From positions 1 to 64,000 of IMG/VR virus record IMGVR_UViG_3300021964_000012: 64,000 nucleotides of DNA. The stretch is one strand, 5' to 3'. Each line of letters opens with the position of its first letter. Within the stretch, counting starts at the first letter, position 1. Shown here one piece after another: positions 52,863-63,340 of the stretch. The notes under the pieces are model-generated. The model was not told the DNA's origin and made no database searches. It worked only from the letters and a program-made list of their open reading frames with translations. The position numbers and the translations under genes were made by a program.

Positions 52863-53957
52863 TTATCCTTGACTAGCAAGTATGTACTTGCCATAACGTT
52901 GATGAAACTCATCAAAGTTTTTAAGTTTAGTAGGTTGAAACGGAATAGCATATGTTGTCAATGCAATCCTTGCACCCATAACAACCAACTCAGTTTCAAA
53001 GTTATCCATCATAAACCTAAAGAAGTTATCACTCATCTTGTGAAACTCAGCATCTTTAACAGTTGCTAATGCTTCTTTAAGCTCATAACACATACTAATA
53101 GTAAGTGAATACATTGCACTAACTTCTTGCACATCCAGTTTGCTAACCTTACCAGCAAGCACATCTGTTGGATTAGGAAGTTTACCAGCAATCTTTCTGT
53201 GTGCTTGAAACTTAACTGCAAGACCTTCACCAATGGTACCAGCAATCAGATCAGTTGCAGTGGTTTCCGTCATGTCCTCTTCAATAAGTTCGCTTACAAA
53301 ACTCCATGATCTTGGAGTAGCAAAAGCTCTACTTGCACTCTTTGCATCAAAATCATACAAGTCCTGTTTAGCAAAACTCAAGTAACCTACTACATCAGGA
53401 TGTATACCATTTTCAACGGCCCAATCAAACCATGCTTCATAGTCTGCACGTATCTCTACGTGTACAAATCTATTTGCAAGTGGAGTAGGCATTCTAAAGG
53501 TAACACCTTTGTCTGACTCTCTGTTACCAGCGGCAATAATAACCACATTGTCCGGCAATACATACTTGCCTAATCTTCTGTTAAGCACCAACTGGTAAGC
53601 GGCGGCTTGTACACTAGCAGGTGCACTATTCATTTCATCCAAGAATACTGTGATCATTGGATAGTCTTTGGCAAATTCTGGTGATGGAAGATCAATAGGC
53701 GGAGCCCAATCCATTACGCCTAGTTCTTTGTTGAAGTAGGGCATACCTCTAAGGTCTGTTGGATCCATTTGACCTAAACGTAAATCAAACATATAACCTC
53801 CAGCATCATTGGTAATCTGCTGAACTATATCTGACTTACCAACACCTGGAGGTCCCCATAAAAATATTGGTCTTTGTTTTTTGAATGCTACTTTAATTGC
53901 ACTTTTTGCACCAGCAGTAGTAACTGTTCTGTATTCAATTTGACTTGAACTTGACAT
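52863..53957 (-). CDS. MoxR-like AAA+ ATPase
   Basis: GPPGVGKS (Walker A), VFLDEMN (Walker B), AAGNR, LANRF, TPRSW. Confidence 0.9.
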   Translation of the reverse strand: MSSSSQIEYRTVTTAGAKSAIKVAFKKQRPIFLWGPPGVGKSDIVQQITNDAGGYMFDLRLGQMDPTDLRGMPYFNKELGVMDWAPPIDLPSPEFAKDYPMITVFLDEMNSAPASVQAAAYQLVLNRRLGKYVLPDNVVIIAAGNRESDKGVTFRMPTPLANRFVHVEIRADYEAWFDWAVENGIHPDVVGYLSFAKQDLYDFDAKSASRAFATPRSWSFVSELIEEDMTETTATDLIAGTIGEGLAVKFQAHRKIAGKLPNPTDVLAGKVSKLDVQEVSAMYSLTISMCYELKEALATVKDAEFHKMSDNFFRFMMDNFETELVVMGARIALTTYAIPFQPTKLKNFDEFHQRYGKYILASQG

Positions 53958-56972: not shown

Positions 56973-57230
56973 TTAGTTATCAAGGATGGGGTCTGTTTCT
57001 TTAGGAAAATGCTGTCGATATTTGTTTACCATCAACTCTCTATTTTCTTCAATTGATATCAGCCCTGCTTCAATTTCCCTAAGAGCAGTCATTCCTCTTT
57101 TGTTAAAATGCGGAGTCAATGGCTGATTGTCAGCACTGTAACTTCTTGCTCTTGTGGATGCAGCCATAATTAAATCATATCTACTTCCGCCTACGTTTTT
57201 TGTGCCTTTGGTATTACTGATTCTTGCCAT
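56973..57230 (-). CDS. RNA polymerase omega-subunit-like protein
   Basis: SRYDLIMAASTRAR...MTALREIEAGLI resembles RpoZ helices 1-3. Confidence 0.7.
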   Translation of the reverse strand: MARISNTKGTKNVGGSRYDLIMAASTRARSYSADNQPLTPHFNKRGMTALREIEAGLISIEENRELMVNKYRQHFPKETDPILDN

Positions 57231-57420
57231 TGATATTGTACCTTTTTATTGTTTCAGTTGTCATAATTCCACTGCGGAAGTTTTCCACTGCGTCTTCAAC
57301 ATAATGCATACTATGGTCACTGTAATCAATTAAACCTAGTAATCTGTTGTCTTCATAAAACTCGACATAGTGCTTGTTGCCGACTTTTTTAAACTTTGTA
57401 TCTCGATTTTCTAAATACAT
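57214..57420 (-). CDS. Hypothetical protein, 68 aa
   Basis: GGAGGT SD before MYLENRDTK; start moved to 57420. Confidence 0.65.
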   Translation of the reverse strand: MYLENRDTKFKKVGNKHYVEFYEDNRLLGLIDYSDHSMHYVEDAVENFRSGIMTTETIKRYNINGKNQ

Positions 57421-57433
57421 ATTACCTCCAATA

Positions 57434-57619
57434 CAATGCAGAGTGTTGCACATGTTTAAGGACCCTCTCATGATCTAAACGGGAGGTGCTGTGTGTCACC
57501 TCCGACCAGGTCCGCCTGATATTCTAACAAGAGATCTAGGCTCCCGTACCTCTTTGCAACTAGGGGGCTGGGGACATAAGTTTTACCTTCTTGCCCACCT
57601 CTTTCCAAACCCTGCACTG
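57434..57619 (-). ncRNA. Candidate structured RNA, about 186 nt, multibranch
   Basis: GC-rich intergenic; closing helix CAGUGCAGGG/CUCUGCAUUG, helix GUUGCA/UGCAAC, hairpins GGAGGUG/CACCUCC and CAGG-CGGA-CCUG. Confidence 0.6.
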
Positions 57620-57625
57620 TAAACC

Positions 57626-57850
57626 TTAGTCTTTTCTAATGTTTTTTAACTTGTTTAGTTCGTAACTTTCACTGAGCCACCAAACCAACATTCCAAAACA
57701 TGCCGCAATGCCAAAACCTGTTACAACCTGTTGTGCTTCAAACCCATATGTATTCGCTATGTATATTAAACCACGTACGGCGGCTAAAACTACAGCAGTT
57801 GCAATTGCAATTATGGCTAGTCTTGACACAATATATTTTGTTTTTTCCAT
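57626..57850 (-). CDS. Small membrane protein
   Basis: 74 aa, two hydrophobic helices, AAGGA SD. Confidence 0.65.
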   Translation of the reverse strand: MEKTKYIVSRLAIIAIATAVVLAAVRGLIYIANTYGFEAQQVVTGFGIAACFGMLVWWLSESYELNKLKNIRKD

Positions 57851-57886: not shown

Positions 57887-57917
57887 ATATTAACACTATA
57901 TATTGTGTCTGTCAACC
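57887..57917 (-). promoter_or_regulatory. Early promoter GGTTGACA-17-TAATAT
   Basis: -35 at 57910-57915, -10 at 57887-57892, downstream GTTAGAAA. Confidence 0.7.
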
Positions 57918-57929
57918 ACTATTTGCATA

Positions 57930-58367
57930 TTATTTGCGAAATTTTAATGTGTGTTGCTTTCCATTTCCATCAGTAAAAGTAATTGTACTGTGTGAATAAA
58001 TATCATTCTGCTGAACTTCGTTGTATCTGGTTTGATAACTACACTGTCTTTGTACACCACCTCTAGCATCACTGTTCATGTTGCCCAATAACCCACCTAG
58101 TATAGCACCAGCAGTGCCACCATCAGGCATGTTTTTGGTTACATTGTTACCAATGATACCACCAATGATTGCACCTCTTAGTGTGTCGTGTGTTCTATCA
58201 CCACCAATTGAAACATCTTGACATACTTCAACCTGATATGGTTGTTGTTTGATTATGCTTTTGTAATGGTCTCTAATTACACCATTTGTATTAGAATCAA
58301 ATGCTTGTACTGGTAATGCGACTAGTGCTAAAGCAGTACTTGCAATGGCAATGTTTAATAGTTTCAT
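57930..58367 (-). CDS. Secreted glycine-zipper 2TM protein (YcfJ-like)
   Basis: Signal peptide; GAIIGGIIGN..GAILGGLLGN. Confidence 0.75.
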   Translation of the reverse strand: MKLLNIAIASTALALVALPVQAFDSNTNGVIRDHYKSIIKQQPYQVEVCQDVSIGGDRTHDTLRGAIIGGIIGNNVTKNMPDGGTAGAILGGLLGNMNSDARGGVQRQCSYQTRYNEVQQNDIYSHSTITFTDGNGKQHTLKFRK

Positions 58368-60927: not shown

Positions 60928-61884
60928 TTAATCAGGAAAGCTACTAATAGAATCTTTTTTCTTATTTGTTGCACTGATTTTTTCATTTGTATTATCTGTC
61001 GTGTGTGCTGGACAAAACTTACACTGTGGAATCACATCATCAATACCATCAATGAACTCTTTTCCTCTTTGTGCAAATTCGTGTACACTAAGTGGATGAT
61101 AGTTGTGCAGTAACTGTCTGTCTTCTTCGGTTATATCAAAATTATGTTGTAAATCAAATTCTGGAAACAACCCAACCGGACCGCATTTGTAGAGTTTTGC
61201 TCTAATAAAATGATGACATTGAAACTGTACAAAGCCACATGCATTATGTGCTTGCTGAGGATCACTTTGGAATAGTGTGAATTTTCCGTTTTCGTTTTTT
61301 TGTACGGCACTTGTATAAAACTCATCCTGTAACCAATAATGAATTTTTACATGATTGTTATCTGTTAGTGCATAGTGACTTTCGTTTGTGATTTCTCCAT
61401 TGGAGAGTTGTCTTACTCCTGAACCTTGAAGAAACTTTTTGCCTTCTTCTAAGTGTCGGTCTAGATCATTCTCGTTATGAACACTTACGCCAATCCAGTT
61501 CTTTTCCTCGTTATGGGTACCAGTGTAATTATTCAGCACATCATACAAGCCTGAAACATGATTTATTCTCACACCATTGGTGAGTATCTGTACTGGTTTA
61601 TTCCACAACCTGTTAATGCCATTTACCCAATCACATATAGTTGGATTAAGCAATGGTTCACCTCCAAGAATAGTCACTTTTTGTAGGCGTATCTTTCCTG
61701 CCCATGCGGTGTACTCTGCTTCATAGTCAGTCCATTTTTGATAACCACTAAAAGCATGATTGTTGAATCGGTTACAGTTTGAGCACGTTAAATTGCACAC
61801 ATTGGTAATATAAAATTCAATGTTAGGTACATATGTGCGAGGATCATCAGGATGTTCATCTGGAAAGTGTTTTGGGTATCTCAT
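60928..61884 (-). CDS. Radical SAM enzyme with C-terminal Cys cluster
   Basis: CNLTCSNC, ILGGEP, C..C..KC..CKFC; start MRYPK at 61884 with TAAGTA 4 nt upstream. Confidence 0.85.
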   Translation of the reverse strand: MRYPKHFPDEHPDDPRTYVPNIEFYITNVCNLTCSNCNRFNNHAFSGYQKWTDYEAEYTAWAGKIRLQKVTILGGEPLLNPTICDWVNGINRLWNKPVQILTNGVRINHVSGLYDVLNNYTGTHNEEKNWIGVSVHNENDLDRHLEEGKKFLQGSGVRQLSNGEITNESHYALTDNNHVKIHYWLQDEFYTSAVQKNENGKFTLFQSDPQQAHNACGFVQFQCHHFIRAKLYKCGPVGLFPEFDLQHNFDITEEDRQLLHNYHPLSVHEFAQRGKEFIDGIDDVIPQCKFCPAHTTDNTNEKISATNKKKDSISSFPD

Positions 61885-61902
61885 AGTGTACTTAGTAAAA
61901 AA

Positions 61903-61978
<76 letters not shown>

Positions 61979-63183: not shown

Positions 63184-63257
63184 TGGCAGAGGACCAAGGA
63201 GTCGAACCCTGGCTTAGTGGGTTGGAGCCACTCGTGCTACCGTAACACTTGTCCTCT
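63184..63257 (-). tRNA. tRNA-Trp(CCA)
   Basis: AGAGGAC/GTCCTCT acceptor, AGTGG-CTCCAAC-CCACT anticodon arm, GTTCGACTC, encoded CCA. Confidence 0.9.
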
Positions 63258-63263
63258 ATAATT

Positions 63264-63340
<77 letters not shown>

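Follow-up and report, generated by a model that had tools for sequence, protein, structure and literature searches.

The analyzed window is the first 64,000 bp of a 328,292-bp virus record with direct terminal repeats (contig Ga0222719_10000007), which represents an uncultured marine jumbo phage. Between two small genes on the - strand of this window lies a stretch of 190 nucleotides that is rich in GC (52% against about 36%; 0.52 at 57475-57624 against 0.31-0.42 in the flanks) and that encodes a structured RNA. The genes and other features around it are as follows.

63267-63340, 63187-63257 and 61906-61978, - strand: three tRNA genes, scoring 66, 50 and 71 bits, respectively, against the Rfam tRNA model.
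60928-61917, - strand: a radical SAM protein gene next to the tRNA cluster.
57930-58367, - strand: a glycine-zipper protein gene.
57887-57915, - strand: a predicted sigma-70-like promoter, TTGACA-17-TAATAT with TG, upstream of TM74.
57626-57850, - strand: a gene for a 74-aa hydrophobic (predicted membrane) protein, TM74, whose stop codon lies 4 nt before the RNA element.
57432-57621, - strand: the structured RNA element.
57418-57431, - strand: spacer, Shine-Dalgarno sequence GGAGG and ATG of the next ORF.
57214-57420, - strand: a 68-aa ORF of unknown function (P68), the usual first downstream gene.
56973-57230, - strand: an RNA polymerase omega-like gene (85 aa; Pfam PF01192 RNA_pol_Rpb6, E 6.8e-08, 32.9 bits against a cut-off of 26), followed by further small ORFs.
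52863-53957, - strand: a MoxR-like AAA ATPase gene (phrog_1297).

The omega-like gene is conserved at 45-100% identity in a set of uncultured marine jumbo phages, but a tblastn search with its product found it in none of 50,697 deposited phage records. A blastn search of the element region against the same records also found nothing. Judged by the AAA ATPase, the nearest cultured relatives are PA5oct-like Pseudomonas jumbo phages (51% identity), followed by the Sinorhizobium and Agrobacterium jumbo phages.

Homologs and distribution

As a single sequence, the - strand of the element folded only modestly better than shuffled sequences (-63.7 kcal/mol, z = -1.94), and the + strand did not (z = -0.65). 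The evidence for the RNA comes from its homologs. Using the flanking proteins as anchors, we collected 16 IMG/VR loci and 80 metagenome loci from marine, estuarine and salt-marsh samples (loci are denoted by L and related genomes by G, each with a number). A covariance model of the 133-nt core detected the element in 59 loci, 50 of them distinct. It was present once in the 328-kb genome (161 bits) and once in each related genome that has it. Three structural subtypes were distinguished: a main group of 178-202 nt, which includes the element of the window, a D group of 227-228 nt, and an L011/L124 group of 233-236 nt. The last two are referred to as long variants.

The element was found only in one clade of uncultured jumbo phages that carry the omega-like gene. 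More distant phages with the omega-like gene had only an AT-rich spacer at this position and no element. A narrow pattern scan of 185,579 cellular genomes gave 9 hits, as many as estimated by chance, and none of them matched the model. A scan of viral contigs with a conserved 3′ motif returned only the known loci and one chance hit inside a 980-aa ORF.

No family of Rfam 15 (4227 models, including riboswitches, ribozymes, 6S, SRP, RNase P, tmRNA, Y RNA and phage RNAs) matched the element. At the gathering score, only the three tRNAs were detected in the window. With E up to 10, nothing overlapped the element in a 701-nt search or in ten diverse homolog loci. Word-level resemblances to a B12 box (UCAGG..GACCUG) and to ydaO (ACGGGAGCC and GGUGAAAC) occur in a different order. 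Neither these nor resemblances to the 5S loop E region and to the Y RNA Ro site were supported by any model. A 2023 catalogue of more than 8,000 unnamed candidate structured RNAs of viruses (PMC10690425) was predicted from IMG/VR intergenic regions by covariation. A fragment of this element could be among its 8,495 unnamed DNA-virus candidates, which are 29-151 nt long and uncharacterized.

Conserved secondary structure and pseudoknot

In the window, the element is composed of the following parts, listed from 5′ to 3′ on the - strand with coordinates verified.

57609-57621: P1 5′ strand, UACAGUGCAGGGU, pairing with 57432-57444.
57600-57608: junction J1/1a, a conserved KUGNRAAR-like sequence.
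57565-57599: P1a, a hypervariable hairpin. The region between P1 and CCUA is 31-54 nt long in the lineages checked; its sequence is not conserved, but a hairpin is kept.
57561-57564: near-invariant CCUA just 5′ of P2.
57555-57560: P2 5′ strand, GUUGCA, pairing with 57445-57450.
57548-57554: P3 5′ strand, AAGAGGU, pairing with 57529-57535.
57536-57547: P3 loop, ACGGGAGCCUAG, in which GCCU (57538-57541) is the 5′ strand of a pseudoknot, PX.
57529-57535: P3 3′ strand, AUCUCUU.
57518-57528: junction GUUAGAAUAUC between P3 and PX, with an AUAU-type motif conserved in all groups.
57514-57517: PX 3′ strand, AGGC, directly abutting P4.
57509-57513: P4 5′ strand, GGACC, pairing with 57460-57464 (GGUCC).
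57504-57508: P4a 5′ strand, UGGUC, pairing with 57471-57475 (GAUCA).
57497-57503: P5 5′ strand, GGAGGUG, pairing with 57482-57488 (CACCUCC), with the loop ACACACAG at 57489-57496.
57476-57481: conserved bulge, CGUUUA.
57465-57470: conserved asymmetric internal loop, UGAGAG.
57451-57459: junction UUAAACAUG, in which CCUUAAAC is conserved in every lineage.
57445-57450: P2 3′ strand, UGCAAC.
57432-57444: P1 3′ strand, ACUCUGCAUUGUA.

In a full-length alignment of 38 distinct main-group sequences, 97.2% of cells formed standard pairs. Changes on both sides were seen in 15 of 43 pairs, covering 91 cells. None of 500 shuffles reached these values, and sliding the 3′ partners by 1-3 columns reduced pairing to 36-55%. 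The core alignment of 50 distinct sequences agreed with this result. Covariation supported P1, P2, P4 and P5, and gave weaker support to P3 and PX.

P1 was 13 bp long in the main group and 17 bp in the long variants, with 99.6% of cells paired, 24 distinct strand pairs, and more than one pair type at 9 of 13 positions across all lineages. P2 was 100% paired, with double changes in 3 of 5 counted pairs; GUUGCA/UGCAAC changed to ACUGCA/UGCAGU and ACUGUA/UACAGU. P3 was 82% paired, with one position often a mismatch and one compensatory path from AGAG/CUCU through AGAG/CACU to AGUG/CACU (A-U to U-A). P4 was 100% paired, with A-U, G-U and G-C at one position and C-G and U-A at another, and with GGAAU/AUUCC and GGAAC/GUUCC in the long variants. 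P4a was 99.5% paired but showed one-sided changes only, so that its support is weak. P5 was 100% paired, with double changes in 5 of 7 pairs.

For PX, the fourth pair was U-A in 11, A-U in 11, C-G in 4 and U-G in 6 of the 38 distinct sequences, with 6 mismatches. In the long variants, the same pairing was CCUGA/UCAGG, with U-A changing to C-G. A blind mutual-information scan for further tertiary pairs was swamped by phylogenetic signal.

Among the unpaired nucleotides, CCUA and CCUUAAAC were conserved across subtypes. UGAGAG was nearly invariant in the main group and the D group (AUGAGAG) but differed in L011/L124 (GUAGUAG, AUGCUAG). Two relatives departed from the common structure. L005 (93-265) lacked the whole P5 arm and the CGUUUAGAU segment through a 31-nt deletion while keeping everything else; either the arm is dispensable or this is a defective copy. 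L084 (39-253) carried an internal duplication of roughly 22 nt in the P3 loop, so that GGGAAGCCUAAG appears twice.

The G-U pairs, for example an almost invariant one in P4a (37 of 38) and one in 16 of 38 sequences at P1 position 11, would be A-C on the other strand. This places the RNA on the - strand. Although a 49-aa GTG ORF overlaps the element, coding was rejected, because stops occurred in nearly all frames and lengths differed by amounts that are not multiples of three. These results, together with covariation far above the controls, in effect exclude a chance GC-rich spacer, a small protein-coding gene or a DNA-level site.

What the sequence-only reading had observed, a GC-rich island encoding a multibranched RNA on the - strand, was confirmed, although its helices held to different degrees. 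Its 10-bp closing helix is real but 13 bp long. The element extends 2 nt further at each end than the proposed 57434-57619, and P1 ends 2 nt, rather than 4 nt, before the Shine-Dalgarno sequence. The proposed GUUGCA/UGCAAC and GGAGGUG/CACCUCC helices correspond to P2 and P5, and AAGAGGU/AUCUCUU, partly supported, to P3. The CAGG-CGGA-CCUG hairpin was contradicted: it was paired in only 43-87% of cells, and its bases belong to the covarying P4 and to PX. GUUUA/UAAAC never varied, and was missing in L005 and in the long variants. The ACGGGAG/CUCCCGU pairing, proposed to compete with two hairpins, could form in 95.5% of main-group cells, but this is no more than column composition predicts, it showed no covariation, and its 3′ partner is deleted in L005. 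PX was not part of that reading.

Genomic context and possible function

In every locus, an ORF with a Shine-Dalgarno sequence started downstream of P1 on the same strand, at 11-18 nt in the main group and up to 36 nt in the long variants. The Shine-Dalgarno sequence followed P1 within 2-8 nt in the main group. This ORF was P68 in most lineages, and otherwise an ORF of 71, 76, 99, 132 or 141 aa, or omega itself; none of them points to a metabolite. In one relative (L062, 1278-1301), the P68 ORF was cut by a stop codon after 8 codons while the element upstream was intact. On the other side, P1 started in most lineages 4-7 nt after the stop codon of a TM74 homolog that is only 35-100% identical, and in L011 it started 7 nt after the glycine-zipper gene.

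A predicted sigma-70-type promoter (TTGACA-17-TACTAT with an extended -10) was conserved about 290 nt upstream of the element, before TM74, in nearly all main-group loci. In three separate lineages, a near-consensus promoter was predicted directly in front of the element. TTGACA-16-TATAAT ended 5 nt before P1 in L101, L106, L108 and L109, which have no TM74, and the upstream gene is divergent in L108. TTGACA-17-TATACT ended about 12 nt before P1 in the D group, as did TTGCTT or TTGCAT-17-TATACT in L124 and L125. In those lineages, the RNA is predicted to be the very 5′ end of a primary transcript.

No terminator-like site followed the element, and none was predicted on the - strand down to the next promoter at about 54.0 kb, in a prediction that does not cover Rho-dependent terminators. 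Contigs from salt-marsh and marine RNA libraries covered the element contiguously with both flanks (one metatranscriptome contig spans 57133-57742), with no sign of enrichment of the element alone. These contigs give no RNA ends and do not prove transcription, as DNA carry-over cannot be excluded. Contig breaks at 57604/57605 coincided with a strain variant.

We regard the element as a new family of structured RNA with two stacked three-way junctions, a long closing helix and an H-type pseudoknot. In our view, it is transcribed from the - strand by host sigma-70 RNA polymerase as part of an early phage operon. Its most likely action, though we hold this only tentatively and at less than even confidence, is in cis as a leader or intercistronic sensor domain, riboswitch-like or factor-binding. 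The conserved junctions and the pseudoknot would bind a small molecule or a protein or RNAP factor, and so set how much of the downstream cistrons (P68, the omega-like subunit and others) is expressed. The constant position just upstream of a translated ORF, the promoter-proximal placement and the absence of a terminator favor this reading. The analysis itself establishes the fold, the strand, the conservation, the position relative to ORFs and predicted promoters, and the absence from Rfam, and we are highly confident that this is a genuine, selected RNA structure. Action in cis, a ligand or factor and its binding, and the regulatory read-out are inferred.

The interpretation in the sequence-only reading, a new riboswitch-like leader or processed ncRNA ahead of the operon leading to the omega-like gene, was partly supported. 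The RNA is undescribed, conserved and in the leader position of that operon, but the mutually exclusive helices that suggested a switch had no covariation support, and one of the hairpins involved was wrong. Like riboswitch aptamers, the element has a leader position, conserved junction nucleotides, a pseudoknot, variable peripheral hairpins and strong covariation. However, no expression platform was found: there was no intrinsic terminator, the Shine-Dalgarno sequence lies outside P1, and the pyrimidine strand of P5, a candidate anti-Shine-Dalgarno sequence, did not co-evolve with it (permutation p = 0.52). A closing helix of 13-17 bp is also unusually long for a riboswitch P1 and more typical of stable ncRNAs.

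A stable trans-acting RNA, cut out just outside P1 and binding a phage or host protein, remains possible but unlikely. Its predicted ends pair in a long helix that starts at or within a few nt of the predicted transcription start, as in many stable ncRNAs. Its complex fold has conserved loops, and the downstream gene varies. Several RNA libraries hold a part of the 701-nt stretch about as long as the element (0.2-0.4 of the sampled words). Long terminal helices and a size of about 190 nt recall Y RNA/YrlA, 6S RNA, phi29 pRNA and retron ncRNA, and the multibranched form recalls Y-like RNAs and pRNA. Against this, no processing signal was recognized after P1, an ORF follows closely, and no partner protein was identified. 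The 328-kb genome had no match to TROVE/Ro (the search did detect it in control genomes), to RtcB or to a reverse transcriptase (RVT_1), and the element had no tRNA-like hit. For an autoregulatory leader of the T4 gp32 or RegA style, strict co-occurrence with the gene of the binding protein was not seen. P68 was absent from a genome that has the element (G001, 316 kb, 91% complete), and a protein-atlas search with P68 gave no lead. The omega-like gene occurred without the element in G002 and L014-L017.

An RNA that modifies host RNAP for processive antitermination, as HK022 put and the Bacillus EAR element do, is less likely still. The element is single-copy, on the same strand, and promoter-proximal or intercistronic in a long operon that is read by host-type promoters and encodes an omega-like subunit, and EAR is also intercistronic and pseudoknotted. 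However, there was no sequence or structure match, no downstream terminators were predicted, within the limits noted above, and the element is about three times the size of put. A self-cleaving ribozyme, or a processing and stability module separating the membrane-protein cistron from those downstream, is similarly doubtful. The intercistronic position, the pseudoknotted fold and the invariant unpaired nucleotides would fit, and small ribozymes are common in phage intergenic regions. But no ribozyme family matched, in four lineages there is no upstream cistron to separate from, and contigs from RNA libraries cross the element uncut, although contigs cannot show absence of cleavage.

Large, pseudoknotted RNAs with this much covariation and no family assignment are uncommon, and such RNAs have often proved to be riboswitches, ribozymes or RNP scaffolds. 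What is new here is the family, found in an uncultured clade of 300-kb marine phages; structured leader and non-coding RNAs of phages are already known. The element could show how jumbo phages sense or rewire the host at the onset of infection. In a more far-reaching reading, which is unlikely but not excluded, it would be the aptamer of a new riboswitch class, or a new RNAP- or factor-binding regulatory RNA. Phages would use it to read the state of the host at the very start of infection and to time expression of host-takeover genes, including their own omega subunit. The alignment, the structure and the consensus promoter predicted to start transcription at P1 make it ready for in vitro transcription, probing and reporter assays without a cultured host.

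The TM74 promoter (57915-57887) belongs to a family of near-consensus sigma-70 early promoters, predicted also at 54016-53989, 51763-51736 and 58425-58398 on the - strand. They are preceded by GG and have the form GGTTGACA, 16-17 nt and a TA...T -10 hexamer. An extended TGTGTTAC -10 and a transcribed GTATATACAGTTAGAAA leader are shared by the 54016 and 51763 sites, and only in part by 57915. In the TM74 promoter, the spacer holds a conserved inverted repeat (ACACAA..TTGTGT) that looks like an operator.
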